64,000 bases of DNA. Source: Trichosphaerium sp. ATCC 40318. Its lineage: Eukaryota > Protista > Tubulinea. The position numbers and the translations under genes were made by a program. Of this stretch, positions 9,125-64,000 are shown piece after piece. The DNA lies in contig JALMLS010000076.1 in assembly GCA_038496445.1 (NCBI GenBank), positions 235,300 to 299,299 on the forward strand, given 5' to 3'. The notes beneath the pieces are model-generated. The model was not told the DNA's origin, did no database searches, and saw only the letters and a program-made list of their open reading frames with translations. The stretch's first letter is position 1. Every line of letters starts with the position of its first letter.

Positions 9125-10054
9125 ATGGAAGCACAACCAAACAATGCAAAGCGATGCTTTTCAGATGACTGTACAGTCATAGATTCTATCCTAGAACATA
9201 TCAACAGCGATATGTTCAATGCCATCGTCAGTATGGTGCTAATAGCAGAAGCACCAGCTGTAACGCAATTAAAAGCTACAAACAAACGCATTTATCAACG
9301 CATAGCATCTATACAGTCTTTTACGCCTGATAAACTAAAAGAAACCGCGTTTCTTCAAATACTCAACCCTGAGCGTCAAACATACCTAAAACTACTCAAA
9401 TCTATACAACAAGGCAAATACAGAGTATTTTGTGTTGATCAAGACAAAACAAGAATTATCTCGTTTACTTCACTCTATGAATCTCTATCAACACCTAAAT
9501 TACATGGTATGGGTATTAGACCAATGGCTGATGTTATTGAATACTCAAATATTAACGGAGCAATTCACATGAGTTGGCCTCAAGGTATTTTTTGTAAAGA
9601 CTGTATTTCTGTTCCAAGGCCTCATTTTGGAGATGGTTACCGTACCATTGCATCCGTGACTACACGTGATAAGAACGTTTGTGGTAGACATACTAATCAC
9701 AAGGAAGCTTTTATTCCTCTTGTATGTGTGACATGTAGCTTGGGGAATGCTATTTTTGAATGGGAAGGTAAGATATATTGTTCAAGATGTATGATAAAAA
9801 GTCCTGTTCGTTCTTTGAAGTATATGATTCATCATCGGGTTGTAGAAACTACAAAGTTTAAATCAAACTCCCCTGGGGTCTATAGTATTGCCAAGGATCA
9901 CTCAGTGCTTGTTGTGGAACTATTGGATGATGATATGAGGACAAAACTTGAAGATCCTAGCAGTTCTGCTTTTATTATTCAACAACTAAAAGAAAGCTTC
10001 TTTTATCAAGATCCTTTTGATAGTAGTTGCCTTTGGCTTCTTGCCTGGGATTAA
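9125..10054 (+). CDS. Intronless 309-aa hypothetical protein, F-box-like N-terminus and Cys/His pairs
   Basis: Uninterrupted ORF; ILEHINSDMFNAIVSMV...VTQLKATNKRIY is weakly F-box-like; CKDC, CGRH, CVTC, CSRC motifs. Confidence 0.65.
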   Translation: MEAQPNNAKRCFSDDCTVIDSILEHINSDMFNAIVSMVLIAEAPAVTQLKATNKRIYQRIASIQSFTPDKLKETAFLQILNPERQTYLKLLKSIQQGKYRVFCVDQDKTRIISFTSLYESLSTPKLHGMGIRPMADVIEYSNINGAIHMSWPQGIFCKDCISVPRPHFGDGYRTIASVTTRDKNVCGRHTNHKEAFIPLVCVTCSLGNAIFEWEGKIYCSRCMIKSPVRSLKYMIHHRVVETTKFKSNSPGVYSIAKDHSVLVVELLDDDMRTKLEDPSSSAFIIQQLKESFFYQDPFDSSCLWLLAWD

Positions 10055-10093
10055 ACGTTCCTGATTTTTCTGAGTACAGTAAAAAGTACTTCT

Positions 10094-10437
10094 TCAATCA
10101 ATAGCAATGAAGCTTTTTTTGTTTCCACCAGCAAATTCTCTTACAATATCATACTTAATATCACCTTTTAATATGACACTTGTGTTTCCAAGAATACCAC
10201 CATGTTGTACAATTCTTTTTGCTTGTTCAGGTGTCACTACAATTTCATGGTACCCAATGACTTCGTGAATCATTAAAGAGAGTAAGTGACAAGCTGCAAA
10301 TCTTGTTGTAGTTGTTTGTCGTAGAACATGCTCTAATATCTCAGGTGGAAACTTTAGAAATGTCACCTTAGCGCTGTCACGTAGACATCACATGTATCCG
10401 AGCGGCAAGTCGATACTGTGGGCACTGTTTTATGGAA
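10094..10437 (-). pseudogene. Truncated F-box(-LRR) family pseudogene
   Basis: FLKFPPEILEHVLRQTTTTRFAACH..LLSLMIHEVIGYHEI is paralogous to the 10669 gene; no in-frame ATG, 9-nt deletion, stops before the LRRs. Confidence 0.8.
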
Positions 10438-10668
10438 AACTGTCACAGAACTAGAGCCAAAAGTGGCTCTAAAGTTCGCGAAACATGGTCCTGGAAAGAC
10501 ATCCACGTTACCTCTAATGGTGTTGGTTTTATTCTTTTTCTTTGTTGACGCGCGACAGTTACCACGATTCATTTGGACTACCCTTTTCACCACGTGACTT
10601 CAGACAAACGTCGTGTATTTTCTTCATAACGCAGGCTCACCACAAGAAGAACGTGTACTCACAACCAT

Positions 10669-11838
10669 ATGGCCAATCGTTCAGTGACAGTTGATCGGTA
10701 CTACAACAATGTTGAATAGTGTTGTTTATTCTAAATAAATGCTTTCAGTACCACCGCTGCCAAGAGGAGTATTTTGGAGCTACCTACAGAGATTTTATCG
10801 AAAATTTTAAGTTTTACAACAACGTCGCGATTTGCTGCTTGTCAAACATGTCGTTTCTTCTCTTCTATCATTCATGACATTATTGGATACTACCATATTA
10901 AAATAAGAACAGAAAATCAAGTAAGAGCTGTTGTGAAGCATAGTGGTATTCTTCGAAACACAACAATCAGAGTAACCAACCATTCTCGTTACTTTTCTCC
11001 TGGCATCTTAAAACTATTTGCTGGTGTTCATTCAATCGATCTTTATACCTTTCTTGTAACAGATGAAGATGTGAAAGCGCTTTCTGGAGTTCATACCATA
11101 AATCTGTCTCGTACACCAATAACAGATGAAGGCGTAAGAGCACTTGCTGGCGTTCATACAATTGACCTTACTACAACTAATGTAACAGATAAAGGCATAA
11201 AGGCACTTGCTGGCGTTCACAGTATACGTCTTAATGATACTCAGGTGACAGATGAGGGTATAAAAGCACTAGCTGGTGTTCATTATATTCAACTTAGCAC
11301 CACTCAGGTAACAGATGAAGGCGTAAAAGCGCTTGCTGGCGTTCACACTATACATATTCGCGAAACTAAAGTAACTGATGAGGGTATTAAAGCGCTTGCT
11401 GGTGTCCATAAGATAAACCTTGAAGCCACTGCTGTAACAGATGAAGGTATAAAAGCACTTGCTGGCGTTCATACTATACTTCTTATTGGTACTAAAGTGA
11501 CAGATGAAGGCATAAAAGCACTAGCCGGTGTTCACACTATTAACCTCAGTGGCACTTCAGTAACTGATGAAGGCATAAAAGCACTAGCTGGTGTTCACAT
11601 TATTAACCTTGGTGGCACTTTAGTAACAGATGAAGGAATCAAAGCACTTGCTGGCGTTCATACTATTGACCTTTCATTAACTTCAGTCACAAATGAGGGT
11701 ATAAAAGCACTAAAAGGTGTTCACAGAATTTCCGTTTTTGGCACATCAGTAACAGATGAAGGTGTTAAAGCTCTAACTGGTTCATACCCTACATGGAGAA
11801 ATATTAATGGATTTCTGAAACTGCCTATGAGAATGTAA
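10669..11838 (+). CDS. F-box protein with 12 x 21-aa leucine-rich repeats
   Basis: Exon 1 10669-10697 (MANRSVTVDR), GT-AG intron 10698-10748, then TTAAKRSILELPTEILSKILSF (F-box) and GVHxIxLxxTxVTDEGIKALA repeats. Confidence 0.9.
11023..11778 (+). repeat. 63-bp tandem repeat x12 (LRR-coding)
   Basis: Unit ggYgttcaYnnnatHnnncttnnnnnnactnnngtaacagatgaaggYataaaagcacttgct. Confidence 0.95.
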
Positions 11839-12021
11839 ATTAAATTGATGTACAGCGGTACTTTGACAATATTATGGTTTGTTTATGCTAGCTAAAACGC
11901 AGAACAGTTTCTGAGTTAGTTTCATCTGTTCAATCAGTTGTTTCGAACACTTTAAGCCAAGTTGATTAAGAAGGTGATTGTCTGTAAAAATTTTACGAAA
12001 GGTCATGTGATTTCTTTTCAA

Positions 12022-12394
12022 ATAAAACACAGGGCCACAGTATCAACTTGCTGCACGGAACTACAAGTGATGTCTACATAAGAATATTCTAATATTGCTT
12101 TGCAGTTAACGTGTGACATGACAGTGCTAAACCGACATTTCTAGAGTTGCCACTTGAGATATTAGCGCATATTCTACGCCAAACAACCACAACAAGATTT
12201 GCAGCTTGTCATACGTGTCACCTACTCTCTTCAATGATTCACGAAGTCATTGGGTACCATGAAATTGTAGTGACACCTGAACAAGCAAAAAGAGTTGTAC
12301 AACATGGTGCTATCTACTACTTGCAATTTGTTCATTTGTATCAAAGCAAGGTGTTAAAGAACTGTCTAGTATTTGTGAATGTATTGTGGGGTAA
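12022..12394 (+). pseudogene. F-box-LRR pseudogene with the LRR array deleted
   Basis: ~94% identical inverted copy of the 10199-10366 F-box segment; then, out of frame, a last-LRR-like segment LAICSFVSKQGVKELSSICECIVG*. Confidence 0.75.
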
Positions 12395-12775
12395 AAGTGT
12401 AATCGTAATCATTGTTTGGAGGATAATTGAGGTCAGGTCATAGCACTAGTTAACGTAGAATACCAAAATTTCATCAAAGGTTACCATTGATTTTGTTGAT
12501 GGAAGCGCAGACTACATTGTGATTTGGACATGAATCCTGTTTCTTGGATTCGTCCTTTTATTGCCACTAATCACAACTATATGTTTTGCTCTCACTTTAA
12601 ATTTCACGTGTTCAGTATTCATGCACGTGATAGCACGAATTTCAAAAAAGCTTTATTAGATGAACCACCTTATTGTTGTATCTCTCAAGTTACGTTACTA
12701 TCAAGGACCTAGTGACTACATAATTAAGCCATTTTGCTAAGCCAGGTTTGAATCAAAAAAGAGCCTCACCACACA

Positions 12776-15079: not shown

Positions 15080-15327
15080 TATAGCTTCTATTCCTTTTTG
15101 CTTTTTTTTTTTCTCGTTTTTCTCACTTTGATACTACGAGCGTCTTATTTACAAGTATTTTAATCCCTCAAGAATCAGAATCCAGTGGATAATGAAACTT
15201 GAGTTTTTTTCTTACATAAAGTAACGAGGGAATCGGCAATCACGTTTTTATCAATGCGGGAAAAAATTTATTTAACAGAAAACTTTATGGAGGCATAGTT
15301 TTGGTTGTGTTACGCAACTTTACATGA

Positions 15328-17115
15328 TCAACAAGGGTAGTGCATTATACCGTCTGGCGTTGCGAGTAGTACAGTTAGATGACTTACACATTCCCGGAAG
15401 GAGTAAAAGTGACTGGTCATGAGGAAGCCAACAATATGACCGTTTTTAGGGTGTGTAGGATATCCACCATCGCCACCAAATGGTCCATGATGTCTTGATT
15501 TGCTTGTTATGAATGTTATTTTATCTATAATAGCGCCACGAATTACATCCACACGTGTAAGTCTTTCGTCGTCATCAAGAGATATTTTGTGGACTTCATC
15601 TCTGCTTGTTTTTTTTCCAGCTTCTATTTTGGGAAGATTAGCAAAACATGCGTTGTGGAATAACTTAATGTGCTTGAAAAAGGTTCAAAAATAGTGTAAT
15701 AACTACTAATAGTATAATTTTAAGTATTGTGATGTAAACCAAGCGGAAAGATTTCCCTTGAGGACCAGGAAATGATAAATGTTCGAAGTCATTATTTCAT
15801 ATTTTTCCAAAAAACTAAATTAAACAAAACCTTCACACTTACCCACAACTGTACCGTCACTGAATTTGAAACCTACATAATCCTTTAGTACTAACCTCCC
15901 TCTATAAAATAGCCAGTCGTTATTTCGTTTGGCAGAAGACAAAACACGTGTAAAAATCCAAAGTTGTGTTCTTTTAATGAAAGTAAAAACAAATAAGAAG
16001 GACTGCTGATGTGCGTACGAAGATAGAATAGGTATATTCCAGCAACAAGCTCTATTGTTGTTACTTTACGTTGTTTCTTTTGTAGCAAAGCCCATGGATC
16101 CTCCCAGAAAACAGGTATGTACATTATCCTGGAGAGAAATGCAACTTGTTGCCATTGTAAGTCAATCAAAAATTTTCCTTCGTGTTTGCTCATAAATCCG
16201 CCTACAAGCAATATTAAGGTCAATGTGGACACGTGATAAAAAATATAAGTTTTCTGAAGAAAAGAAATACATAATTATGCTTGTAACGCAAGCATTGCGT
16301 CTACTGAATAGTTCTTTCTAATGAAAAATAAAAAAACTTGCAAAAAAAATTTGATAAAAATTTGATACGTACGGTCCAGACGGCTTGGAAATACATACTC
16401 CACCTTCTTTCCTGTAGTGGTTTCAAATTCAATGGCTTCTATTGTGAAAAAACTGATTAGTGATGATTCTTTGGTGAAAAGATTTGTTTTTTCTGACAAT
16501 TGTGCAAAAAAATTCATGTTTCGCGTACTAACGGACTCATCATGCCAAAGATTAATTGAAACTATATCCTCGTTTTTAAGGAATGCTTTAACAACCTTAT
16601 TCTCAATAGAGCAATAATCAAATGTATTTACAAGCAGGAATAAGTCGTCTTCTTTCTTTTGAACTAAAATTCTATCTTTTTTTCGTATCATCGCGTTTGC
16701 CCTTCTTTTAAGTGCCTTTATCACGTGATTTTTTAGAAATCAACCCGAAAAAAAATTAAAAAGTTTAAACCATACCTTTCTCCATGAAAAATTATCTGAT
16801 GGCGTCACTGTAGTCGGAACTGTTTCCCTAAGACCAAAAACGTTAGTTTTCCAAATAAAAATAAAAAAAAAGTAGTTTAGCGCACCTTTCCCGAATTAAA
16901 ATAGTCTCGTATAAGTACCTCCATAGAGTATCATTTAACAACAGCTTATTGACGCAATGGCAGGTACGTCCAAAATTAAGTAACGAAGTAATATCATCAG
17001 CAAAGTATCCCGTAATATCCTCTAATATTTCTTTTGGTATAGACTCCAAAACACCGCTAGGTGAATAATATAAAACCGTTTCAGAAAAATATTGTTTGTA
17101 TTCTCTTTGGGCCAT
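15328..17115 (-). CDS. Multi-exon F-box protein with jacalin-like C-terminal region
   Basis: F-box LESIPKEILEDITGYF...LLNFGRTCHCVNKLLLNDTLWRYLY; IIDKITFITSKSRHHGPFGGDGG and IEAIEFETTTGK resemble beta-prism I lectin strands. Confidence 0.7.
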
Positions 17116-17728
17116 ATAAATTATACCAAATCAATCCTCTTATACTATATATAATACTTCTAATACCAATTAAAACAGAAAGCGAGGTGTTCGTCTTTTC
17201 TCTTTGTTTTGAAAAAAAAAACTAACAGTTTGCGTAACGGTGAGGCTCGCTATCGTTCTTATGCGTAATGAGGTTCTAACCTACAGGTAGGCCTTGGTTT
17301 GGATTTTACTATCCCTTTAAGCCAGCACTAGATCAAGTAATGTGGAACGCGTACGGATTTTCTATTACTCCACACAAACATTTCCTACGAAATATACGAT
17401 ACCGTTAGAAAGTCACGTGATAAAAGGAGTTTTGTACAAACAACCGTTAAGGTTGCACTTCTCAAGAAAAGGAAACTGTCAGATGTACCGTACCAACCTA
17501 GGAAGTAAGTGAGGTTGTTTTAGGGCCAGCCATTCAAATGAAACAAAAACAAGGGACAGTTTTGCTGCTTTAAAAAGTTTTGTGAGTTTTTGATAATAAT
17601 TATATCTTTGTTACGTAAAAGTGATTTACCGCGTACGACCAAGTTTCGAACACAGACTTGATTGCTCTCGCTTTATGACGACAAATTTCTGATCAGGGTT
17701 TTGATAAGAACGGCTACAGATATCAAGA

Positions 17729-19870: not shown

Positions 19871-20273
19871 TACACATGGATATTGTTTTTGTAGTTGTAA
19901 GTTCTATGTATTGAAGCTGTATTGTTGTAAGTTTGTATAAAGTTAATTTAAGGACTTTACGAATACTGTTCCCAAAAGGGAGACTTAACAAACCCAAACA
20001 CTTTTTTATCTGCAGAAAACTTTATTTGTTTCTTAGTAGCTTGTTAGTGTCGCAATATAACTCGATCTGTTACCTAACAGTTTTCTTTTTAGAAAGGTGG
20101 TTCCCATTACACCAGCTATATACATCATTAATACGGAGTAAAAGGTAGAGTAGAGCGAGAAAAGCCATTGCTAAGCCTCTTTTTTTTTGGACTGACACGC
20201 TACTAGGTAGGATACCACTCATTGTGGTTAATAAACGTTGATTCGTTGTAATATTATTTCGTTTCTTAGGTTC

Positions 20274-20520
20274 AAAGTTGATTGCTCTGAACAAGAGAAT
20301 GACCCAGAATGAAGGCGAGGATGAAAGTAGAAAACCCACATACACTCCCAGCAGCAAACAAAACATAAGGTCTATAAAACTTGTTGGAAGCTAAAAAAAA
20401 AACCAATCACCAACTCTGCCAGACTTTATCACGTGCCATAAACGACACAGAAACAAGAGAAGCAAGCCATTAAAAACTAACCAAGCACAAGCAATGAAAC
20501 TTGAAATTCCCTTTCAAAAT
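20274..20520 (-). CDS. Possible small membrane-protein exons or remnant
   Basis: Hydrophobic frames GISSFIACAWLVFNGLLLLFL and YVLFAAGSVCGFSTFILAFILG; gene model not resolved. Confidence 0.3.
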
Positions 20521-20963
20521 CAAGGAGAAGGGATACAGAGAACGCATTAGCAAAACATATCATATACAATGCTCCATAAACAGCTAGAGTTCGTGTTCGT
20601 CAACTTTTGAAATATACACCTAATCCAAACTCCCAGGTAGGTCAATTAGTGGCTAAAACGACTTGAGTTTTTCGACTTTGGGAAAGTAGTACCAGGGCCT
20701 TTATTTATTGAAAATAGATCCTCGGTCACATTGTAGACGCATAACATAGAACTGGCTATTTTCAATAATCAAACTGCTGAATACTGACATTGCTTTAATG
20801 TGTGACTAAATAAAGTGATACATTGATGTTCAAATTATTTGCCTTGGCAATAAATTGATTGATTGGCTTACTGACACAAATGTAGATTGTCATGACGTGC
20901 AAATTTATGTCATTATCTCGTTTTTTATATGACATAGTGCTTCATACCTTTCGTTTTAAGATG

Positions 20964-21902
20964 TCAAATAATGTGGTGAAATTTAACTTTTACGCCACGT
21001 TTTCTGAGCTCAAGTATTCTTTGCTCTGAAATACGGCAAAAAAGAACATGTAACACCTTGATACCTAACAGCGGAGCAATCCAATCATCTGTCGCTTTTG
21101 TACGTGATAAAATGACCGTGTGTGCACTAGCAAGACTCTTCATACAGCTCCTCCCAATATATTGACAATTCTGTAGATTAATGAAATGAACGCCAGCCAA
21201 CGCTGCCACTCCCTTGTCTGTCACTTTTGTACCACCTAAATATATGGTATGAACGCCAGCCAATGATGAAATACCCTTATCCCTGATTGACATGCAAAGA
21301 TTCAAGTCAATCGTATGTACACCTGCCAATAAAGATAATACATCATCTGTTATTCTTGAGTATGCTAGACGGATCGCAATATGTGGTATGACTGCTACAG
21401 CTTTAATGCCAACTCTTGTAAATCCGACAATACCATGGTTGTAGCCTTGATCCATAAAAACATCCTCCAGGTGTTTGACAACTGATACTATCCCAGAGTC
21501 TGTGATACCTTTACATTGCGATAAATGTAAACTGGTAATACCAGAAACAGCTTTTAAACCCAAGTCTGTAAGGTTATTATTCCTCTTAAGGTACAGTTTT
21601 TGAACACCAGAGAGAAAAGCGAGATCGCTATCACGTGCTTCTTTATATGATTCAAATGATATTTTGGTGTTTTTGAGAAGAGGACTTCCTGATAGACGCG
21701 AACAATCTAACGTTGATCGAACCTTGATAACGTTGTACCCGATATGATGGTGGATAATGTCAGATAATCGGTTACAAGTTTGAGAAACATTAAATCGATC
21801 AGGAACATCCACAAGGCTTAGTAAATGAGCGATTATCTCTGTAGGCATATCTAGTAGCTCGTAATCATTAAGTACATGTTTTAGGTTATCATGTGGCTCC
21901 AT
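20964..21902 (-). CDS. F-box + LRR protein (same family as 10669)
   Basis: LLDMPTEIIAHLLSLV..RFNVSQTCNRL F-box; repeats such as LAGVHTIDLNLCMSIRDKGISSLAGVHTIYLGGTKVTDKGVAALA; intronless ORF. Confidence 0.9.
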   Translation of the reverse strand: MEPHDNLKHVLNDYELLDMPTEIIAHLLSLVDVPDRFNVSQTCNRLSDIIHHHIGYNVIKVRSTLDCSRLSGSPLLKNTKISFESYKEARDSDLAFLSGVQKLYLKRNNNLTDLGLKAVSGITSLHLSQCKGITDSGIVSVVKHLEDVFMDQGYNHGIVGFTRVGIKAVAVIPHIAIRLAYSRITDDVLSLLAGVHTIDLNLCMSIRDKGISSLAGVHTIYLGGTKVTDKGVAALAGVHFINLQNCQYIGRSCMKSLASAHTVILSRTKATDDWIAPLLGIKVLHVLFCRISEQRILELRKRGVKVKFHHII

Positions 21903-22009
21903 AACACCTGTTGTACTCGGTAAGCACTAGTACCGAGAAATTATGATGGCTAGTCAAATGGAGTAAGTTGGGTGCCTGTCTTTGTTATTTCATAGAATAT
22001 TGGAAATAC

Positions 22010-22435
22010 ACGTTCCAACGTGTAAACGATTATCTGACACTATCCACCATCATATTGGTACAACGTTATCATAGTTCGATCAACGTTAGATTGTTCACGT
22101 CTATCAGGAAGTCCTCTTCTCAAAAACACCAGGTTATCATTTTGGTATTTCTCTCGTGCAAGAGACTCATATAACCTTGCTTTTCTTTCAGGAGTTACAT
22201 TTAAACTGGACCTCATTCGCAATAAGTATATCACAGATATTGGATTGCATTCATACATCTATCTTATTGTAAAGGCATCACAGGATCATGCATGAACAGT
22301 CTATCAAACGCATTATGTTAATCTACAAGGAACAAACGCAACAAATGATTGGGTGGCCTCACTTTTTGGTGTAAAAGTAATAGTACTATACCTGAGTATG
22401 TTGCTTCTTTACAAGGCGTAACAGTACATATCTAA
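22010..22435 (+). pseudogene. Inverted, internally deleted pseudogene copy of the 20964-21902 gene
   Basis: 22021-22131 is ~94% identical to the reverse complement of 21665-21776; later patches match the LRR and C-terminal parts; frameshifts. Confidence 0.85.
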
Positions 22436-31012: not shown

Positions 31013-32003
31013 ATGTATGGCTTACTCAAGCTCCCTTGTGAAATTCAACAATACATTGTACATTCAACGCTGAAGCTTTCACAAAGTTCCATACATTATC
31101 AAAGAAAGCAGCAACCAATACTCATTTTGATGGATCATTACAACGTAAAGGGAAATGGATCAGATGGTACAAAAGTGGAAAAGTATGGTGTGTTGGCATA
31201 AAAACGGACAACTAATAAGACAAGTACATGGGTCAATAATAGGCAAAATTTAGAATTCAAGGATTGGTACAAAACTGGACAACTTCAGGAACATAGCATG
31301 TGGATCAATGATAAACCAAGTGGTGAGATGAAAGTGTACTACAAAAATGAACAAATCAATATATACTGTAATTGGCTGAATGGTAAGAAAAACGGTGAAA
31401 ACAAAGAATGGTATCAAAATGGTCAACTTAAAAGGCAATGTACGTGGATTGATGATAAGAAAACTGGCGAATACAACACGTGGTATGCAAATGGCCAACT
31501 CAAGGAACAAAGTTTATGGGTTGATAATGAATTGAATGGGATCCTCATGGTGGTATGAAGATGGACGGCGCAAGGAACAAACTAAGTGGATAGATGGAAA
31601 AAAGGCTGGTGAAGAGAAGCAATGGTATGATAATGGACAGCTCAATTTACTAGGTATGTGGGCAGACGGTAAGCGCCATGGTCAACTAAAATACTGGCAT
31701 GACAATGGTCAACTGAGTGAACAAATTATGTGGGTTGATGGTAAACAAAATGGCCAACTCACGACGTGGTACAATACTGGTAAACTCAAGGAACAAATCA
31801 CATGGGTTGATGGCACACAACATGGTGAAAGCAATGAGTGGTATCACAACGGACAGCTGAAGATAAAAAGTATGTGGGTTAAAGGTAAAAAACATGGTCA
31901 AGTTAAAGAGTGGTATGAAAATGGACAACTGAGAGAACAAAGCATGTGGGTTAGAAGGCTGATGACACATTGTGAGTGGCCTGATGAACTATGGGGCGAA
32001 TGA
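31013..32003 (+). pseudogene. F-box + MORN_2 repeat pseudogene
   Basis: MYGLLKLPCEIQQYI then 1-nt deletion; ~13 WYxNGQL repeats spread over several frames; 5' ~130 nt ~94% identical to the 39302 gene. Confidence 0.88.
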
Positions 32004-36887: not shown

Positions 36888-39302
36888 TTATCTTTTACTT
36901 TTTGACCAATATGATTGTGAAGAGTAAAACGCCCTTGTACAGTACCTAAACCAAGCAAATACTGTATGATAAAACTTATGGAAAGGAAACAATATGGTGT
37001 TGATTGATCGCATCATTAAATTGTTTGTAGTGGTACCAGTTATTACCTTTTGTTCTATCAAATCTCCATTATCATACCACATCTTGTAGTCTCCTTGTTG
37101 TGTGCCATATTCAAAACGAGAAAGCTCAGCTAATTTTCCATTTTTATGCCATTTCTTGCGGTCACCATGTGCTCTATTATTAATCCACATACTTTGTTCT
37201 CTAAGTTGGCCATCTTCATACCATACTTTGAGTGGTCCATTTCGCTTACCATCGATCCATATGCTTTGTTCTCTAAGTTGACCATCTTTATACCATACTT
37301 TGAGTTCACCATTTAGTTTACCATCAACCCACATGCTTTGTTCTTCAAGTTGGCCATCTTCATACCATACTTTTCGTTCACCATTTTGTATATCATCAAT
37401 CCACATACTTTGCTCTCTAAGTTGGCCATCTTCATGCCATAATTTTCGTTCTCCATTTTGTATACCATCAGCCCACATGCTTTGTTCCATAAGTTGTCCA
37501 CTTTTGTACCATTTTTTATATTCACCACAATGTATGCTATCAACCCTGTATTCTTTACGTTGTCCATTATCATACCATGCCTTATGTCCATTTTGTTTAC
37601 CATTAACAAACATTCCCTTTGTTTGTAATTGTCCATTTTTATACCACTCCTTGTGTTCCCCATTTTTTTTTCCATCAACTATAGTACCTTGTAGCCACAG
37701 TTGTCCGTTGTCATACCATCCCTTGTATTGGCCAGTATCATCAACAAACATACATTGTATCTTTAGTTGTCCATTTATATACCATTCTGTGGATTTACCA
37801 TTTAGTTTACCATCAACCCACATACTTTGTACCCTAAGTTGGCCATCTTTATACCATACTTTTTGTTCACCATTTAGTTTACCATCAATCCATGTTCTTT
37901 GTTCTCTAAGTTGACCATCTTCATGCCACATTTTTTGTTCACCGTTTAGTTTACCATCAACCCATGTGCTTTGTTCTCTAAGTTGACCATCTTCATGCCA
38001 CATTTTTTGTTCACCATTTAGTTTACCATCAATCCATGTGCTTTGTTCTCTAAGTTGACCATTTTTATACCACACTTTGAGTGGACCATTTAGTTTACCA
38101 TCAATCCACGTGCTTTGTTCTCTAAGTTGACCATTTTCATGCCACACCTTTGTTTCTCCATATTGTTTACCATCAACCCATGTGCTTTGTTCTCTAAGTT
38201 GTCCATTTTTATACCATATTTTGCGTACACCATTTTTATTACCATCAACCCATGTGCTTTGTTCTCTAAGTTGGCCATCTTCATACCATACTTTGAGTTT
38301 GCCATTTAGCCAACCATTAGTCCACATACATTGTTCCTCCAGATTACCATTTTTATACCACTTTTTGTGTTCACCATTCTTTTTTCCATCAACCATAGTA
38401 CCTTGTAGCCACAATTGTCCATTTTCATACCACTGCGTATATGGACCAGTTAACTTATCATCAACCCACCCACATTGTATCTTGAGTTGGTTGTTTTTAT
38501 ACCATACTTTCACTTCACTGTTTAGTTTATGGTTGTCCCACATACTTTGTTCTCTAAGTTGACCATCTTTATACCATACTTTGAGACCATTTTTATTACC
38601 ATCGACCCATGTGCTTTGTTCTCGAAGTTGACCGTTGTCATACCATATTTTGAGTTCACCATTTAGTTTACCATCAACCCATATGCTTTGTTCTCTAAGT
38701 TGACCATTTTTATACCATACTTTGAGTGGACCATTTAGTTTACCATCAATCCACGTGCTTTGTTCTCTAAGTTGACCATTTTCATGCCACACCTTTGTTT
38801 CTCCATATTGTTTATCATCAATCCACATGTTTTGAAACTTACGTTGTCCATTTTTGTACCACACCTTGAGTTGACCATTTTGCTTATCATTGACCCACAT
38901 AGTTTGTCTAAGTAGTTGTCCATTTTCATACCACTCTTTAGTTTTGCCATGTTGCTTGCCATTAACAAACATAAACTGTACTTCAAGTTGACCGTTTTCA
39001 TACCATTTTTTATGAGTGCCGTGTTTTACACCATCAATCAACATGTACTGTTCCTTACATTGTCCATTCTTGTACCATTTGTTGCATTGCCCATTTTTAG
39101 CGTATTCGTGGCACCATACTTTTCCACTTTTGTACCATGCAATCCATTTCCCTTTACGTTGTAATGATCCATCAAAATGAGTATTGGTTGCTGCTTTTTT
39201 TGACAATGTATGGAACTTTGTGAAAGCTTCAACGTTGAATGTACAAATACATTGTTGAATTTCACATGGGAGGTCAAGTAACACCAATGAAGGAGAAGAC
39301 AT
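36888..39302 (-). CDS. Intronless F-box + ~30 MORN_2 (YwqK-like) repeat protein, 804 aa
   Basis: LLDLPCEIQQCICTF N-terminus; 24-aa unit GKLNGELKVWYKDGQLREQSTWVD (72-bp DNA repeat). Confidence 0.92.
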   Translation of the reverse strand: MSSPSLVLLDLPCEIQQCICTFNVEAFTKFHTLSKKAATNTHFDGSLQRKGKWIAWYKSGKVWCHEYAKNGQCNKWYKNGQCKEQYMLIDGVKHGTHKKWYENGQLEVQFMFVNGKQHGKTKEWYENGQLLRQTMWVNDKQNGQLKVWYKNGQRKFQNMWIDDKQYGETKVWHENGQLREQSTWIDGKLNGPLKVWYKNGQLREQSIWVDGKLNGELKIWYDNGQLREQSTWVDGNKNGLKVWYKDGQLREQSMWDNHKLNSEVKVWYKNNQLKIQCGWVDDKLTGPYTQWYENGQLWLQGTMVDGKKNGEHKKWYKNGNLEEQCMWTNGWLNGKLKVWYEDGQLREQSTWVDGNKNGVRKIWYKNGQLREQSTWVDGKQYGETKVWHENGQLREQSTWIDGKLNGPLKVWYKNGQLREQSTWIDGKLNGEQKMWHEDGQLREQSTWVDGKLNGEQKMWHEDGQLREQRTWIDGKLNGEQKVWYKDGQLRVQSMWVDGKLNGKSTEWYINGQLKIQCMFVDDTGQYKGWYDNGQLWLQGTIVDGKKNGEHKEWYKNGQLQTKGMFVNGKQNGHKAWYDNGQRKEYRVDSIHCGEYKKWYKSGQLMEQSMWADGIQNGERKLWHEDGQLREQSMWIDDIQNGERKVWYEDGQLEEQSMWVDGKLNGELKVWYKDGQLREQSIWIDGKRNGPLKVWYEDGQLREQSMWINNRAHGDRKKWHKNGKLAELSRFEYGTQQGDYKMWYDNGDLIEQKVITGTTTNNLMMRSINTILFPFHKFYHTVFAWFRYCTRAFYSSQSYWSKSKR

Positions 39303-40110
39303 GCTTTATTTCTAAAGAAAACAATAAGAAATATGAAGGACAACAAATATTTAACAGTGTAGACCCTTTGAGAAAGTTTAAAAAGCTGCTTTGAAAATAG
39401 AAATAGCACGTGTTTAAAATTTTTTCCAAAAATACTATCAAGAAATGATGCTCGCTAACCACAGACTATACAAAGTTCTATAAAATTACACTGAGGCAAT
39501 GTATCGTGAGTACTCTTTGTTTGAAACTAAACTTTAAAAGCTATTATGTAGCACTGTAAAACAGTGAGGGAAAAACTAACACCAAATTCTTTGGTCGGTA
39601 TTTTGTTTCAAAAAAGAAGGCTGACCAAATAACAAATCTAACTCACGTGTATATACACAAAACAATGGTTGCCTCTTTACCTTATTTACTAAGGCACAAG
39701 TTTTAAGCAATTGGGTAGGTTGTGTACTATAGTGTAGTTGCCTGTACTCACAAACCATCTTGAAAAACGATTTAGCTAACTAAAAAAATAGCATTATTTC
39801 AGGTCAAACAATAACGGTCTAGACGCATTGCTAGCAGCTCGTATGGGCAAAACAGACACGAATCTAAATTTAAAGACATACATAACAGAACAATCGTTAA
39901 AAGACAATAAAGGACAGACGCTAATAAAGAGTTACCCTATGGTAGCTGAAATGTCATGTACCGGGCTAGTGTTTAAATCTCAGGTACACAATTCTACGTC
40001 AATGAAACACAACTCTGCTGACACTCACTGAAAGGTAATGGCAGCTTTGGGACTTTCTGGAGGGTTTGGATGATTTATAACTTAGTAGTTTTGAACACAA
40101 AAACCCACAT

Positions 40111-40351
40111 GGGTTTGCACTGTGTATCTGATAATAACCACGTGCGCACTAGTTTTCGTTGTCAAATACAGTCAAGTGAAATTAAACGGAAATCAATGAA
40201 AGGGTTTGCGCTAATTTTCGCGAACTTGGTCAGAGCCATGATTAAAAAATGTGCTGTTTTATGCAAAAATATTGTACAAAAGTCCTCCAAAAGAACAGAC
40301 TTCGAAGAAATACAACATACCGCCAAATTTCGCGAAAGGTAGTGCAAACCC
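40111..40351. mobile_element. MITE-like element, copy 1
   Basis: Perfect 11-bp terminal inverted repeats gggtttgcact/agtgcaaaccc flanked by CAT on both sides; second internal TIR copy at 40202 pairs ~28 bp with the right end; body homologous to 56573-56731. Confidence 0.72.
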
Positions 40352-41703: not shown

Positions 41704-42954
41704 TCAATAAAATATTTTCCAGGAGGCAACACTGCCTTGTGGTTTAACATACCTGTCTGAGAATACAGTATAATTCAAAAAAGTAGTAGACGCCCATAAT
41801 TGAAGTGTATAGACACCTTCTAAATCTGCTGTTGCAAATAACTCACGTACTTCTTTCTCAGGTCCTCTCATTTCATTATGACGATAAGGATAGAAAGTAT
41901 GTGAAGGAAGAACAAGAAAATTAAAAAAATCTTCATCTCCATATTGAGTCTTAGAAAGTTTTAAGAATTTTGGACCTACTGTCTTCCACACAGGGTTATA
42001 AGTCTTCCACTTATCTCTTATAGAAGGTATCATTTTTAATATGTATCTCAAAGTAACAGAAGAATCATGACAAGCGAGTATACCGTTTGCGATGTAAGAG
42101 TCTTTAGTTTCCTCAGCAGCAAAACAATCATACTCGCTCTCCTCAAGATCTTTGATTAAAGGCTCAAAAGATCTCAGGCATAGAGAATCAGTATCTACAA
42201 AGATACCACCATACTTATTGAGTATCTCATAACGACCAATATCGGAAGATGCATGACAATTTTTAACATCTTCTAAGCATGGTGGTATGCCATTAAAGAG
42301 CTCTTTGTTGACCATCCACTCATTTTCTTTAAAATCGTCATCTCTCCATAACTTGTATTTCCATCCTGATTCTTCTGCAGCTGCTTTACATGTTTTCATA
42401 AGCTCTTTATGAGGCTGTTTTGGCCAAAAAACAAAACGTCAGTGATTTTTTTTTTCAAAGAAAGAAAAAAGTGTTTTTGATTTCCTGACGTGTCTGGGAA
42501 ATACTGGAACGAAAACGATGCACCATACGCCTAGCGGTATAGGAAACTTTCAATTTATACCACTTAGCGCTTGGTACCTTTTGGGAAAGATACAAATTGA
42601 ACGTAAGTTGTTTAGCCGTACCGGTTCTGTGCCTAGCCATATTTGGTGGAGTATGCGTGGTATTTTAGGTGGTTTCTATGCGTTTTAGCGTGACTCCAAG
42701 TGCAAGTAGCGTACTGTTTTATCTATGCTCTTTAAATATGATAGAGTTGTTGGAGGTATAGTTAAGCTTGGTTCAAACCACTTGTTGTATTTATTTAACA
42801 TCTCTTCGTTTGGTTTTAGAAAGAAAAGTATTACACACGCTGACAATAGCATAAGGATCATTTTAAAGCTTAAAATGTAATTTAGCGTAACATGTTACAA
42901 AAAGTCGTACTGCACGGGTTTAAGCGGTTTCTTACGCCTAGGATGGTTTTGCAT
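41704..42954 (-). CDS. Glycosyltransferase family 32 (DXD, OCH1/MIPC-synthase-like), type II membrane protein
   Basis: TM segment MILMLLSACVILFFL; IPRILHQIWLG; WKYKLW; SSDIGRYEILNKYGGIFVDTDS; IANGIL; TVGPKFL; FYPY. Confidence 0.9.
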
Positions 42955-43556
42955 GGTTATATATGGCGAGCTAGCGGTCTTATGTGAGTTGTGTGATGAC
43001 ACAATGTCAAGTTTCTCTTAAGCCACGTTGAGGTTTTTGACCAAATTAACCTATTAAGTGGTGAGAAAGAAAAGGTCCTAATTTCGGTTCTCTCATGCCT
43101 AGGATGACCTTGATTGTATTGTTTTTGATGGTAAAAAATAAGAAACGTTTCTTGTGTCAAGGAACACATTTCTCTGGCAGTGTTACAAAAACGTTTCTAA
43201 CGGATGTGGAAACATCTCTAATATTACGGTTTATTATTAAAACTGTCTTCTAATTGTTTTGCTTTGTAAGACCCAATAAACCCTAAGTCATTCTTGCCCC
43301 ATCACTATTCAAATCCTACTTTTTTTACCCCTTGAAATTCTTCTCTCGGCGGAATTTCGAAGGAATATTTTGCCTGCACGCCAACTAAGGTCAAGCGAAG
43401 ATACATGTTCTTCCTGTCTATGTTATTTTTTGTACGATACAGTGGACAATAGGAATCTAGCATTGTTTAGTTGGAAACGTTTTCTACAAAGGGCAAAATG
43501 TGAAACAGCCAAAACGAAACAAAAAGAGCATGCTCGCGGAAAGGTTTATTAAATAG

Positions 43557-44153: not shown

Positions 44154-44829
44154 ATGGGTAGTAGGCAAGTGGCTGATATGGTAACGTTGATGATTAAAAT
44201 GGTGTTTTACATCCGGATACCAATACTACAAAAGTAAAATGGCTCTATCGGAAAAGTGACATTTATCTGTTTTGGAAACAAGTGTATAACTCATACAAGC
44301 ATAACTAAACTGAGTGATTATAATTTATAGTATACAATGTCCTTGCGTTTGAAGATCTTTCGTTCATGAATAATTAAATTGTGATCTAAGTTAGCTACCA
44401 TGAACAAAAAAGAAAAGCAAAATAATCATACCTGCAGGGAACTTTGTATACAAGATACTCTATAGAATATTCAACTACTGAAGCTACCGCTGTTAGAAAT
44501 ATATCTGTTAGCCACAAAGTAACATGTGTCTCAAGTACAGACGTGATAGCAAAAGGCAGAATAGTTTGCCCTAGTAATAGGATGAACACTTTGTGCTTTC
44601 TGTATTTTGGTCGTTGAAAATTTGCTAACCAATAGATAAATTCGAATATCCTAAAAAATATACGAGTATTGCAACTAACCTAACAATGGCCTTTCCAGCT
44701 TCCTGATTTTTATCACTAAGTCTCACGTTTTCCTGTAGATTGTACGTCAATAATAGCTAAGATTAGATAAGCTTCAGAAAAGAGTAGGAAAAATTGAAAA
44801 TAAAATTATTAGGCTCCACCCATTCTTGG

Positions 44830-45030
44830 GCGGGATGTTGGTATGCTAATGGTACATTGAATGGTGAGTACAAGCAGTGGTATGAAAACGGCCAAGTTCG
44901 TATGCAATGCTCTTTCAAAAATGGCAACAAAGAAGGCGAAGAAAAAGGCTCGTGTGACACGAACCAAAGTAACGAGTGTCTTACAGAGATGGGAAAAAGG
45001 AAAGTTGAGTGCAAATCTAATAGTTATCAT
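44830..45030 (+). pseudogene. MORN_2 repeat remnant
   Basis: CWYANGTLNGEYKQWYENGQVRMQCSFKNGNKEGEEK; no intact ORF around it. Confidence 0.7.
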
Positions 45031-45297
45031 TGTTTTGGCTTCAGATTGCGAAATGTCCAGCTGAACAAGCAATCGTGCGAAATTAAAGCTTTACTTGACT
45101 CTTAACAAAACCACGCTTTGTTTAAAAATATCCAATATCACGTGCACAACGAGTATGCGTAGAAAAAAGGTATCCTTTGTGCGTATAGCTTGCTAGTATT
45201 AATGTGAGGTTCAAATAAGGCCGTGGCCATAACTTAAGTGCTTATCTAAAGTAAATTTGGAATCTAAGCAACTTGTCTTTATTAAATTTTCCACCCA

Positions 45298-51200: not shown

Positions 51201-54200
51201 CCAACGCAGGGTTTTTTTAAATTAATTCTTATATTTCCCAAGGTAAATCAATTGAGCTTCGCGTTTTCTTCAAAGATGCTTTCGGCAACAACTGCGACAA
51301 TCTTAGCAGTCCAGTTGAACTTTCACTTGCTTCAAAAGATACAAATAAAACAATAACACTACAAGACAAAGAGGTACAGATAACACCACTTCACGTGTAA
51401 GTTAAAACAATAAAATAGGGAGATGGCGTGTTCGCAGCTGCAGTGGACTTGACAAAGGCTGGAGAATACAAGCCAGCTGCTTCTTATGGAGAATGCACGT
51501 TTGAAGCTTCTCCAATATCTGTAGTACATGCTCCACCTTGTCCTTCAAATTGCCGCATAGAGGGGAAAGGATCTCAGAACGCTCAAGTTGATGAAGAAGC
51601 TTTCTTTGAATTATTTATTTGTGATGAATACGATAATATTATCACATCACCTGTTGGTGTCACAGTAACACTGGGGCTTAAAGATGCAAACCAAGACGAG
51701 ATTACAGGTATAGATTAACCACAAAACCAAAAAAACATGAGTATTCCTACAATTTTCTGAAAATTTATACTTTATTGCAGATGATCAAGAAGCTATTGTT
51801 GTTTCTCTTGAAAAGTCTCCTGAGGGCATAAGGAAAGGGAAATATACTATCAGTAATCTTGGAGATCATTTGTTATCTATTGATTTGGAAGGGAAACCAA
51901 TCAAAGACTCACCTTTTGCTGTCAAAGGATTACCAGGTAAGGTTTTGTTGTAGCTTGCTCATGCATTGATTATCGTTTCAATAGGGCGTACACATATTCC
52001 AAACACACTTGTTCTCGTTTCTGGTAGAGACCAAATCAGCGGAAGCACAGGAATCACAGTCAAGACGAAGGATGGTACCAGCTTTGAAATTTGCTTTAAA
52101 CAACCTTGGTTTGTTATTTACGCTTTCTCTCAGTACGAGGCAACTTGTGTAATGTTGGTGGCGATAAAATTGAAGCCAGAGCGCTTCCTAAAGATTATCT
52201 ATCATTACCAGTTAAAGATACAGAAGACGGCACATACGAAGTCAGTAAGTCCAATACCCGTTTTACAGTCATGAATATTGTTTTATTCACAGAATGCGGC
52301 TAAATGATTTTTAAAAGAATGCTACGAAAGTATTTATTGCTCTATTTAGGTTATCCTTGGGACTTTCATGGTAAATTTGATGTAAGCCTGAATGTGAATG
52401 GCAAGGAAGTTCCTCAAACAGTATTTGTTCAAGTGGATAAAAAAGCGCTTGATGCTTCCATCAGTGAACGTGTTGTTAAGGCATTCCCTTCATCACACGG
52501 ACTTTTGACAAAGTTTTTAAGCACTTGTGCACCTAGTGAGCGTGCTATGTTCCTGAAAGACCTTGATAATCTCCAACAAGAATCTTCTGCAACCCAAACT
52601 GTCGAAGAACAGCCTAAGCAATCAGATGTTGCTACTGAACCTTCTAAGAATGCTGAAGCTGTTGACGTATCAGACAAAGACGAAGCCACTAAAGAAGAAA
52701 AAACTGAACGTGTTGAAGAGCCAGCGATTGTTGATAACAAGGAAGTTGAACAAGAAAAGGCTACCACAGAAGAAAAAGATATCATACAGCCAGCACCAGC
52801 TGAAAAAGAAAGTGACAACAAAGACGATGAGAAAGAGGACGACACCAAAGACGAACCACCTAAAATTGTTGTGCCTACAGTGATTATCCAAGAACCTTCA
52901 ACACAAGAGCAAACCGAAAAAACAAATGAAACAGCGGCTGAACCAGAAAAAGAACCTACAGAGCAGGTTGAAGAATCTAACAACCCAGACATACCTGATG
53001 TAATAGTTGATGAACCGGAAACATCTAAGGAACCTGAAGTGCCTACAGTTGTTGTCCAGGAACCTCATCAAGTAGAAGAACCCACACCTTCTGTTACAGT
53101 TCAAGCGCCACCTGTGGTTCCTTCTATAACAGTCAACGAGGTGTCCAACCCTGATGATTCCGTAAACAAACAAACTCTTGAACAGAATCAAACAGAAGAA
53201 GATGAACAAACCACGGTAGCCGAAGAAGAAGAAAAAGACACAACGCTGCAAGAAAAATCACAAGATGAACCAGCTCCAATAGATGATGTGCCCATTACTC
53301 AAGACGTAACAGCTGATGATACAGCTCCAATAGATGATGTGCCCGTTGTTCAAGACGTAACAGCTGGTGAGACAGCTCCAAAAGATGACGTGCCTGTTAC
53401 TCAAGACTTGAAAACAGACGATGTTGAAGATACTTTTCTGGATGTAAAAGACGATGTTGTAGTTCAGAAAAATGAACCTACACCAGCTGCAAACATTGAC
53501 AATCAAGACACACCAACATCTGATCCAAAGCTCCAAGAAGAGCCTAGCAACGATACCGACACCAAAGAATCGCCAGTGGAGAAAGCAGATGCTGAGGATG
53601 AAGGTGAAGCAGGAGATGACACTTCAACTGAAGAAAAAACGAAGGTTGAGAGTGTGGAAAGTAAAGCTGCTGATAGAGTCGAAGAAGTTACACCAGAGGC
53701 TATTGTTGTTGAAGATGGGACTAATCAAACCGATTACGATGGCGATACTATTGTACTAGAACTCCCAGAGATTACTTTTGAAGTAGTTGAAACGACTACA
53801 GTCGAAAGAAGTCCAAAACAATCAAGAAAAGTCAAAGAAGAAGAAAAAGATGAACAGCTTCCTGTTTCAAACCCATTAATTGACGACGATGACTTGGATC
53901 GTATACTAGACGTACAAGCTTTAAAACGTTCATATTTTATAAGACTTACTGTGTACTAAGGATATTGATGATACGCCTGATGATGAGAAAGATCCAACAG
54001 ATGTACGTCAAAACTCAAAAGTATTAAGCTAGTACAATGAGAAAGTAAATTTTGGTTTTTTTTTTTGTACAGGAAGACTGGGCAGATATCTTAACAGAAT
54101 TTGAGCAGAAGGAAATTAAGCATAGAAAACAAGTTGAGGCGATATATGCTCCACCTGATAATGAAGAGGCGTTAAAGGCTGGAGGCGGAGACGTACGTTA

Positions 54201-54895
54201 CTAACAAAAAAAAACAGCTACAAAAAAAAAGTAACAAATTACAAAACGGCATGGGCGCCGCTCTTTGTGAAAACTCTCGACTGGTTTTAATACCTAAAAA
54301 CATTCAAAAAGACTCTACTGTGTTCACATACCATATTGGTGTAATTTGAAGGCATCTTAAGTTGCATAGTAAAGAGAACCTTCAACTTTTTTTTGAAAAA
54401 AATACGTGTCTAAACAATACCTCAGGAAGAATGGACAGATATTTTGAACGAATTTGAAAATAAAGAGGAAGAACACTTACAGACATTACTAAAGAAAGAA
54501 GTACGTTCTGAGAAAAAAAAACCCACCCACGTGCATCAATAAAAGACTTACCAAAAAAATCAATCAAATAGGTTGAAGAATCAGAGAAAGAAGAAAAACA
54601 AAAACCCAATCCAACAGAGCCATCTTTAGATATACTAGCAGAATTGGATTTAGAGCTAGAAAGCGTTGATGACGTATTTCCTAAATCCACATCACCCTCA
54701 ACTTCCTTACAAAGTGAAAAGCCACCTCCATCTCCAAAGTCAGCACTGAGAAGATCACCATCGCCAGGTACATCACCCTCCTCTCACTTGTTTTCTGTTT
54801 AATGAATATCCTCTCTAATGTATTGTTAAGGTGCTGATAGTTCAAGACGTGTTCGGTTTGCCCTGGAAGATAATGTACTTCATTACGAAGAGTAA
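45298..54895 (+). CDS. Large filamin/gelation-factor-like protein: tandem CH actin-binding domain, many filamin-type Ig repeats, long acidic tail
   Basis: WQVQQRKTFTRWLN, LQNGVILHILL, NLVLGLLWTLILRYHI, WEDGRAFCGIV, DEHSVMSYVSYY; repeats ASGSGLE / DNGDGTF / GSPF; many short introns; ends SSRRVRFALEDNVLHYEE*. Confidence 0.9.
53271..53407 (+). repeat. 51-bp tandem repeat (~2.7 copies) in filamin tail
   Basis: cagctccaatagatgatgtgccc... at 53271, 53322, 53373 encoding APIDDVPITQDVTADDT. Confidence 0.9.
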
Positions 54896-55541
54896 ACAAC
54901 AAATAATTAAAGAAAAAAGCAGCAGGACTTACATAACGCCCAAGCCTTAACTTTTTGTTGAATTTTGTTACTATCTATCCCAAACAAACCGTTAAGACCA
55001 GATATAGTTGTGGTTACCACAAGATGTGAAAAATGAATTTTGTGGCTGTCTGAGAGTAACGTAAAGCACGCCATTATCCCAAGAACCGTTGGAGGTTGAA
55101 ATGAAGTAGTACTGTAAGAACAACGCTGTTGGACACTTCATACGCTGAAGTATCATTATGCAATCGCCTTTGCTATCATGCCAAGAAGCGTTCGCCATTG
55201 TAGTAGAGTTAAATAATGAATTCTACGTCAAGTCGCCTTCAATCAATCAACTACCTTTTACGCTTAACAATTGAACAACCTCGTCAAGTATTTGCTCACA
55301 CCGAAAACTCACAAGACATTGAAGTCTAGAGCAAAAACCAACAATGAAGAATCTTTCAAGAACATATTGGATTCAAAAAACGTATGTATTTTGTTTCATT
55401 TTTGATATGCTCAAGTGCATTAAAAGAGATGCAACATTGTTATGAAAACTAGCAGAAAATACAGTCACGTGATTTTTTCAATGGTGCGTATTGGCTTTAC
55501 AGTTATACAATACCAAGCGCCTAGAATTGTTTGTTATCTGT

Positions 55542-56405
55542 TTATCTGTAGATCTTGTGAGCTCCCAAACTTTTAACACCTTCATTTGTCACATTCCAAC
55601 ATCTCCATAGGCCTATCTCATAAACACCAGCAAGCACTTTGATACCTTCATCTGTCACTGAAGTGTAACCAAGGTAGATGGTATGAACACCTTTGAGTGC
55701 TTTAATACTTGCATCAGTAGTATTTGTGTATTGTAAATTAATCGCATATACACCTGCCAATGCTGCAATGCCTGAGTCTGTTATTGACGTACAACAAGCC
55801 AAGTCGATAGTGTGAACACCAGCCAATGCCTTTAAACCTTCATCTGTGACACGTGTGTGAGCTAAACTAATCTCATGTACACCTGCCAATGCTGCAATGC
55901 CTGAGTCTGTTTTTCTCTCACAAGTAGACAGGTAGATAGTGTGTACACCTGTCAATGCCTTTAATCCATCATCTGTAATATTTGTGCGTGATAAGTTGAT
56001 ACAATGTACACCTGCCAATGCCTCAACCCCCTCATCTGTTATTGAACAACAGTCATGCAAGTAAATACTATGAACACCTGCCAATGCGATGATACCTGAA
56101 TCTGTTACTGACTTATTAGTCAAGACGATGGTATGTACACCTGATAGTGCCGATGTACATTCATCTGGCTCACAAAATCTCAAGTCAATTATCGTATTCT
56201 GTAGTAATGGACTGCCTGCAAGCAACTGAGCTTGATTCTCACTTCTTATATAGATACGGCCGTATCCAACGTGGTTGTGAACAATTTCTCTCAATAGGTG
56301 GCATGTTTGGGCTGCCCGGAGCGCACAAACAGTTGTCCCTTGTTTCAGAATATGCACTATTAGTTCAATTGGTAGCACAATAAAGTCAGTGTCTTTTTCT
56401 TCCAT
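55542..56405 (-). CDS. F-box + LRR protein (same family as 10669)
   Basis: MEEKDTDFIVLPIELIVHILKQ..AAQTCHLLREIVHNHVGY; ~9 repeats alternating 21/22 aa (GVHTIxLxxTxxTDEGLKALA / GVHTIxLxxCxSITDSGIAALA). Confidence 0.9.
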   Translation of the reverse strand: MEEKDTDFIVLPIELIVHILKQGTTVCALRAAQTCHLLREIVHNHVGYGRIYIRSENQAQLLAGSPLLQNTIIDLRFCEPDECTSALSGVHTIVLTNKSVTDSGIIALAGVHSIYLHDCCSITDEGVEALAGVHCINLSRTNITDDGLKALTGVHTIYLSTCERKTDSGIAALAGVHEISLAHTRVTDEGLKALAGVHTIDLACCTSITDSGIAALAGVYAINLQYTNTTDASIKALKGVHTIYLGYTSVTDEGIKVLAGVYEIGLWRCWNVTNEGVKSLGAHKIYR

Positions 56406-63980: not shown

Positions 63981-64000
63981 CTTTTAAATTAGCATGTATT

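Follow-up and report, generated by a model that had tools for sequence, protein, structure and literature searches.

We analysed a 64,000-nucleotide (nt) stretch of the genome of the marine amoeba Trichosphaerium sp. ATCC 40318 (contig JALMLS010000076.1, positions 235,300–299,299; the window), eukaryotic DNA with a GC content of ~37%, in which genes for an F-box or F-box-like head followed by an array of short repeats lie together with their relics. We propose, with a probability of about three in four, that these genes represent two lineage-specific families that grow by local duplication, turn over by birth-and-death, carry short conversion tracts and probably encode receptors of Skp1–cullin–F-box (SCF) ubiquitin ligases. 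Members of the first family would join an F-box that Pfam can recognise, through a conserved linker, to an array of leucine-rich repeats (LRRs) of the LRR_6 type, 21–24 amino acids (aa) each. Members of the second would begin with a short head of helices that contains an LPxEI motif and is probably an F-box in degenerate form, and continue with a MORN_2 array. Genes of both kinds would mostly be single-exon, and each family may number from hundreds to more than 1,000 loci. Genome-wide searches covered the Trichosphaerium assembly (70.28 Mb, 642 contigs), with 150 candidates scored per family search; the first-look counts given below are bounds and not totals.

F-box genes with leucine-rich repeats

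The earlier note on this DNA had listed three intact F-box–LRR genes in the window. All three indeed carry LRR_6 repeats, and their F-box is recognised by Pfam in genes 1 and 2 and by the family's own head profile in gene 3 (Pfam cut-offs were 24.3 bits for F-box-like, PF12937; 20.5 for F-box, PF00646; 23.4 for LRR_6, PF13516; and 29.6 for MORN_2, PF07661). The long open reading frame (ORF) of gene 1 (10774–11838, + strand) scored 28.6 bits for F-box-like and 107 bits for LRR_6, and has no in-frame ATG. A 29-nt exon 1 (10669–10697), a 51-nt GT..AG intron (10698–10748) and a long exon 2 (10749–11838) join in frame, which agrees with the start at 10669 noted earlier; the predicted gene 1 would thus have two exons and span 10669–11838 (+). 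Gene 2 (20964–21902, − strand) is a single exon of 312 aa, and scored 29.4 bits for F-box, 36.8 bits for LRR_6 and 119.6 bits with the family head profile. Gene 3 (55542–56405, −), also a single exon (ORF 55542–56450, ATG at 56405), scored 65.3 bits for LRR_6. It matches the LRR-type head profile, which comprises the F-box and the linker (86 positions), with 114 bits, and is therefore homologous to genes 1 and 2. Contig C129 carries a copy of gene 3 with an identical head-profile score (118.1 bits) and the same 306-aa open frame, flanked by a repeat that is 98% identical.

The array of gene 1 consists of 12 tandem units of exactly 21 aa each. Sixteen positions of the unit are invariant or almost so, and the variable ones, 4, 6, 8, 9 and 11, are the exposed strand positions. 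When units were compared with one another, the framework codons gave a synonymous divergence (dS) of 0.80 and a non-synonymous divergence (dN) of 0.08, indicating an old age of the units and purifying selection on them. The five variable positions gave a dN of 1.38, higher than the framework dS, an estimate that is saturated and comes from few sites; it suggests that positive selection may act on these positions.

A dispersed repeat of ~155 nt is found twice in the window (40202–40351 and 56574–56730), with at least 70 first-look copies in the genome at 78–98% identity. The end of the repeat (~27 nt) corresponds to its beginning read in reverse, much as in a miniature inverted-repeat element, and the two copies sit upstream of family genes, ~125–280 nt from gene 3 and ~900 nt from the MORN_2 gene described below. 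We considered whether F-box genes are carried by a transposon and rejected this: the ~155-nt repeat is an unrelated dispersed element, a 2.1-kb inverted repeat around one family gene sampled elsewhere (locus L014) is a duplicated P450 gene, and the repeats at another sampled locus (L020) are pieces of retroelements.

A MORN_2 gene with an F-box-like head

The second family is represented by an 804-aa gene (36888–39302, −), in which an F-box-like head (residues 1 to ~52) is followed by ~30 MORN_2 units of 24 aa. The gene had been described earlier as an F-box–MORN_2 gene. The MORN_2 part of this description stands (298 bits against the cut-off of 29.6; array periodicity of 72 nt), but the F-box part does not stand as such: the head has neither a Pfam nor a profile–profile match to an F-box, and shares with the LRR-type head the LPxEI motif alone.

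We compared predicted structures of the head with known ones. A model built from a more diverse alignment shows three short helices after LPxEI, and gave 11 matches with Z ≥ 2 among 48,161 chains. Four of the 11 were F-box or F-box-like regions (Cdc4, cyclin F, an F-box/Skp1 complex and Elongin A), all with Z of only 2.0–2.2. A search of PDB sequences with a profile of the head returned chance-level matches only. On balance the MORN-type head is rather likely to be a true, degenerate F-box.

The closest paralogue of the gene lies on contig C443 (14323–17517, locus L022), and is collinear with 37602–39935 of the window, including 640 nt upstream. The two are 89% identical overall and 96% in the head, and judged by this divergence the paralogue is too distant for a simple allele. 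The head had a dN-to-dS ratio (omega) of 0.17, the array one of 0.38. Along the array, dS ranged from 0.08 to 1.1, and this unevenness indicates a mosaic history.

Size and turnover of the families

Both families clearly have more than a few members. A genome search with PF12937 gave 1,809 first-look candidates, and all 150 that were scored lay above the cut-off. The LRR-type head profile gave 1,367, with all 150 scored at E ≤ 6e-24 and most in open frames of 250–580 aa; the MORN-type head (a 65-aa query) gave 1,104, with all 150 scored at E ≤ 5e-17. Family copies stand singly among intron-rich host genes. Twenty family loci sampled elsewhere in the genome (198 kb) contained 32 LRR-type head modules; several of these belong to short relics, and five of the loci hold head-to-head pairs. 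The families are thus very large, dispersed and rich in relics, as expected from the birth-and-death evolution suggested earlier.

All five relics that had been noted in the window were found, at or near the places given for them. Four of them take part in the pairs described in the next section; the fifth is a short MORN_2 relic (44788–45159, +) with a tblastn match and a MORN_2 score of 26.4 bits, under the cut-off.

The assembly has four to five loci for Skp1 homologues, of which one lies 27 kb upstream on the same scaffold (scaffold 57). From their domain content, the LRR-type F-box genes are probably substrate receptors of SCF ligases, the role that the earlier note had predicted for them.

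Inverted pairs of head segments

The window holds three inverted pairs of near-identical head segments, which had been reported before and proved real, with identities of 87–96%. In each of the three, the local partner is the best or almost the best match genome-wide, and the segment in common is head and linker, never the repeat array. Array similarity between a relic and its gene does not exceed that between any two family members. The collapse of identity on the array side, also reported before, was observed in every pair: from the head segment to no homology in pair 1, from 95% to 70% in pair 2, and from 95% to 67% in pair 3.

Pair 1 (10194–10382/12116–12313) is formed by two relics on either side of gene 1. 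Relic A (10097–10441, −) lies head-to-head with gene 1, and contains a head module (113 bits with the head profile) and the start of the linker before it stops after 97 codons. Relic B (12022–12440, +) is a partial inverted copy of relic A, covering the upstream stretch and the head, with a weak Pfam F-box-like score of 18.1 bits. The homology comprises ~60–100 nt of upstream sequence plus the head, in two blocks of 96% and 88% identity (87% overall). It stops abruptly in relic B at 12313, and relic A runs on into degenerate linker; the abrupt end indicates that relic B is a truncated partial copy.

Pairs 2 and 3 are each made of an intact gene and a relic. The partner of gene 2 (pair 2, 21654–21783/22014–22142, 91–93% identity) is a frameshifted LRR-type relic (21996–22335, +), which lies head-to-head with it, lacks the LPxEI half of the head and has a 95% patch at 22029–22131. 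The partner of the 804-aa gene (pair 3, 31056–31190/39112–39246, 96% identity) is a MORN-type relic (31022–32003, +), convergent with the gene and split over at least two frames, with a head patch of 95–96% at 31037–31190. In both pairs gene and relic are homologous across their whole overlap at 67–70% identity, except for one tract of 103–155 nt at 95%. None of 300 column shuffles reached the observed contrast between tract and flanks in either pair, and over the same stretch other paralogues are 77–84% identical to the gene. The tracts are therefore more than conserved sequence. As far as the sequence can tell, they bear the mark of template switching or short gene conversion between long-standing neighbours.

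Could the pairs be artefacts of long-read assembly? The assembly does contain uncollapsed duplicate contigs (for example C129 and C443 versus C57). However, the arms of the pairs are short (100–200 nt), are 4–13% diverged, and have indels and unique flanks, whereas palindromes arising from chimeric reads would be long and identical. We consider this explanation extremely improbable. It could also be imagined that read-through of the 5′ end of a gene and its mirror relic yields a hairpin RNA that feeds small-RNA silencing of family members. The sole support for this comes from pair 2, whose arms of ~130 nt are 91–93% complementary and ~230–320 nt apart; the arms of pair 3, however, are 7.9 kb apart, and the arrangement is rare among the sampled loci, which makes such a function highly improbable.

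Heads are not more constant than arrays

The earlier note had seen in these pairs a design of constant F-box and variable array, with inverted pseudogenes as possible conversion donors that remodel the arrays of intact receptors. Diversification from pseudogene donors or cassettes is exemplified by chicken antibody genes, trypanosome variant surface glycoproteins and lamprey variable lymphocyte receptors. Two of the pairs do have sharply bounded tracts of high identity between a relic and an intact gene, and all three are inverted and local. However, the tracts cover head and linker and none lies in an array, the part that varies; since the near-identical patches are in the head or linker, the relics are unlike donors for binding surfaces. 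The array units, moreover, are old (dS of 0.8 between units), with no recent homogenisation or shuffling.

As a rule for the family, constant head and variable array also failed. Over the 325 pairs formed by 26 intact LRR-type genes, the heads had a median identity of 60% and the best array alignments one of 62%, and the head was the more conserved part in 143 of the 325 pairs, even in a sample chosen by head similarity and thus biased against the array being as conserved as the head. Variation in the LRRs is located at the exposed strand positions.

Nor is inverted pairing with a relic a general design. A local head copy of at least 90% identity was present in none of the 20 sampled loci, and one locus had an inverted head copy at 83%. 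When adjacent family pairs within ~6 kb were counted in the sampled loci and the window, seven were head-to-head, four tail-to-tail and four tandem. This head-to-head excess (7 of 15 against 25% expected; p ~0.06 by our own count) is suggestive only.

Inverted local duplicates, furthermore, also arise from unrelated genes. Locus L014 (C146:65700–75600) contains a 2.1-kb inverted duplication, 95% identical, of an intron-bearing cytochrome P450 gene (612–2724/7203–9315), which brackets an F-box/LRR gene and a QueC-like gene, and some other sampled loci have inverted repeats of unrelated sequence. With the patches in the wrong part of the gene and rare elsewhere, the constant/variable design with pseudogene donors is unsupported, and we regard it as very improbable.

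At another sampled locus, L009 (C18:1–9900), we noted a 103-nt inverted repeat (895–997/3080–3182) with 100% identity, one arm of which replaces the first half of the F-box in a 214-aa LRR gene; the other arm lies ~300 nt upstream of an intact family neighbour.

Host expansion or import from viruses

Tekle et al. (2023; PMC10521059) described the genome of Trichosphaerium sp. (70.87 Mb, 37.69% GC, 710 scaffolds) and ascribed ~1,568–1,581 gene models, with F-box and MORN as their commonest domains, to giant viruses, under the term 'unprecedented gene trafficking'. In that reading the genes arrived in hundreds of independent lateral transfers, the donors being giant viruses such as Harvfovirus, Hyperionvirus, Indivirus and Tupanvirus. 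The best matches of these models to giant-virus proteins speak for it, with E-values down to 1e-88 in the available part of the published tables. So does the consensus of the LRR unit, which is almost the same in metagenomic virus-like proteins and in the amoeba. In addition, language-model (Atlas) neighbours of residues 1–52 of the MORN_2 gene are Nucleocytoviricota clusters with F-box and MORN_2 (score 0.85), which we treat as a lead only.

To see where the genes have relatives, we searched outside the genome. No entry for the window proteins was found in a collection of 15 billion proteins. The closest relatives of gene 1 (searched with the long exon 2 only) are transcripts from a marine protist transcriptome (MMETSP) with up to 48% identity, which have the same head and linker, and one of which scores weakly as F-box. 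Next come metagenomic proteins, rich in K, N and I and encoded on contigs of 9–32 kb, with an almost identical LRR unit consensus and a different N-terminus in which Pfam finds no F-box. These are plausibly the klosneuvirus-type proteins of the published BLAST matches.

For the MORN-type head, a HMMER search with its profile through all of 1.84 billion representatives yielded 17 proteins only. Ten of them were looked up: seven are clusters that are or contain MMETSP transcripts, and three are JGI entries on contigs of ~1 kb. No virus was among the source names of the ten, most of which are missing. Nine of the ten have MORN_2 (eight above the cut-off) and none has a Pfam F-box. All other matches of the MORN_2 gene came through the repeats alone, mostly to bacterial YwqK-like proteins. 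Scans of IMG/VR with the MORN-type head, the MORN array, LRR gene 1 and a family alignment gave nothing or remote repeat-only matches of 32–36% identity.

The repeat parts thus have virus-like relatives at 31–40% identity, and for the head modules none was found, either in IMG/VR or, with the MORN-type head, among the 1.84 billion representatives. This leaves the suggestion that whole genes were domesticated from viruses unsupported. It also bears on the hundreds of transfers, as both head modules are common to hundreds of amoeba genes and absent from the viral and metagenomic relatives found, and the copies are scattered singly among intron-rich host genes, with gene 1 at least needing a spliceosomal intron. 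Furthermore, in the available part of the published transfer table a few name groups (Harvfovirus8, Harvfovirus20, Harvfovirus3, Hyperionvirus5 and Indivirus ILV1) recur ~100–190 times each, the pattern expected of one expanded host family with matches to a few viral relatives. The few recurring viral names and the home-grown heads together point to one or two host families expanded in place, and we find hundreds of transfers quite improbable. An old exchange of the repeat type, in either direction, is possible.

Other features of the window

An ORF at 9125–10054 (+), taken earlier for a weak F-box-like gene, shows no F-box signal in Pfam. It is a single exon of 309 aa without any Pfam family, and belongs to a separate small family: 17 matches were found, ~8 of them close copies and the others weaker, and several are clustered on contigs C135 and C228.

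A locus at 15331–17130 (−), overlooked in the earlier note, has an F-box-like exon (16846–17130, 28.4 bits) upstream of a jacalin-lectin exon (15331–15684, Jacalin 40.3 bits). The two exons probably form one intron-bearing gene, which would represent a third class.

A 231-aa ORF at 41704–42399 (−) has a glycosyltransferase region of the DXD sugar-binding type and weakly resembles, below threshold, the glucosyltransferase domain of TcdA/TcdB (20.2 bits; cut-off 23.6). A fragment of a DDE_Tnp_4 (Harbinger/PIF-type) transposase occupies the extreme end of the scaffold (63757–63999, −).

Discussion

The above results are consistent with two host families that would gain members through local duplications of any orientation, frequently head-to-head ones, and lose them by truncation and frameshift, leaving relics among ordinary intron-rich genes. 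Pair 1 would have originated by a truncated partial duplication, and pairs 2 and 3 through short tracts of gene conversion or template switching between old neighbouring paralogues. An intact protein would bind Skp1 with its head, and its repeat surface would be where the SCF ubiquitin ligase holds the substrate; for LRR genes, the five exposed residues of each unit may provide surfaces that differ from one protein to another.

Several points weigh against this proposal. The F-box of gene 3 scored 21.3 bits (F-box-like) and 17.5 bits (F-box), both under the Pfam cut-offs. The MORN-type head has no Pfam match even at E of 10. Against the LRR-type head it gave an hhalign probability of 2–4%, with the LPxEI stretch alone aligned, and Foldseek found nothing with its predicted model. 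The predicted models of this head are themselves of low confidence, with pLDDT of 45 (too poor to use) and of 64 (the one compared with known chains above). Only 150 candidates per family were scored and the family counts are inflated by haplotig duplicates, and the 20 loci sampled elsewhere were picked from the best-scoring matches. Finally, the sequences of pairs 2 and 3 would fit chimeric duplication as well as conversion, and no outgroup sets a direction.

The closest parallels to the proposed host families are F-box families of nematodes and plants (the Caenorhabditis F-box genes and the plant FBX superfamily), as described in the parts of the literature available to us. These too comprise hundreds of lineage-specific genes with birth-and-death and many pseudogenes, and their variation is concentrated in the substrate-binding part; an anti-pathogen role has been proposed for them and is largely untested (PMC8120010, PMC8665587, PMC3030570). 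The Trichosphaerium genes differ in that their heads are joined to 21–24-aa LRR_6-type repeats and MORN_2 instead of FBA, FTH or kelch domains, in that conservation is no higher in the head than in the array, and in their density, with up to ~1,800 F-box-like candidates in 70 Mb (an upper bound). The LRR-type genes also resemble FBXL proteins of the Skp2 class, in which cysteine-containing or RNI-like LRRs come after an F-box at the N-terminus, and they match Pfam F-box and LRR_6. Unlike FBXL proteins, they have shorter units (21 aa in gene 1), a family-specific linker after the F-box and massive paralogy, and their binding to Skp1 is a prediction.

Giant viruses encode proteins with the same repeat types (klosneuvirus-type LRR proteins; F-box, MORN and ankyrin families of pandoraviruses and others), with an LRR unit consensus almost identical to that of the amoeba and, as a lead only, the F-box and MORN_2 architecture in Nucleocytoviricota clusters. 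Such repeat families scale with viral genome size, according to the part of one study available to us (PMC5753266). The virus-like relatives, however, have an N-terminus that is not an F-box by Pfam and lack both amoeba head modules, and the amoeba copies lie among host genes, one of them in need of an intron. Fusions of F-box or related domains to LRR-type repeats have also been described, as large families, in Parachlamydiaceae of amoebae; judging by the portion of that report we had, these are bacterial effectors thought to hijack the host SCF (PMC4209131), whereas the Trichosphaerium genes are the eukaryote's own.

The presence of F-box and MORN domains in this genome has already been published in outline (PMC10521059), where these genes are read as transfers from many viruses, and where the head modules, family structure, relics and inverted patches are not described. 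Much of the published giant-virus 'gene trafficking' would be explained by two host families, in place in the genome, which resemble a few viral proteins in their repeats. The inverted relic pairs, in turn, would be ordinary by-products of duplication and conversion.

An immune role of the families would be drawn by analogy with those of nematodes and plants. It can be speculated that the dense F-box repertoire, possibly 5–8% of genes, serves cell-autonomous surveillance against klosneuvirus-type giant viruses, with viral LRR and MORN proteins on non-F-box heads acting as decoys or mimics. We hold this to be unlikely; if true, the repertoire would be among the densest sets of F-box receptors reported for a eukaryote, engaged in an arms race with giant viruses. 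With the two families proposed here, an amoebozoan would join the short list of eukaryotes, nematodes and plants among them, that have many hundreds of F-box genes, and it would become possible to test, in a protist that meets giant viruses, whether ubiquitin-ligase receptors can serve as an arsenal for innate recognition.

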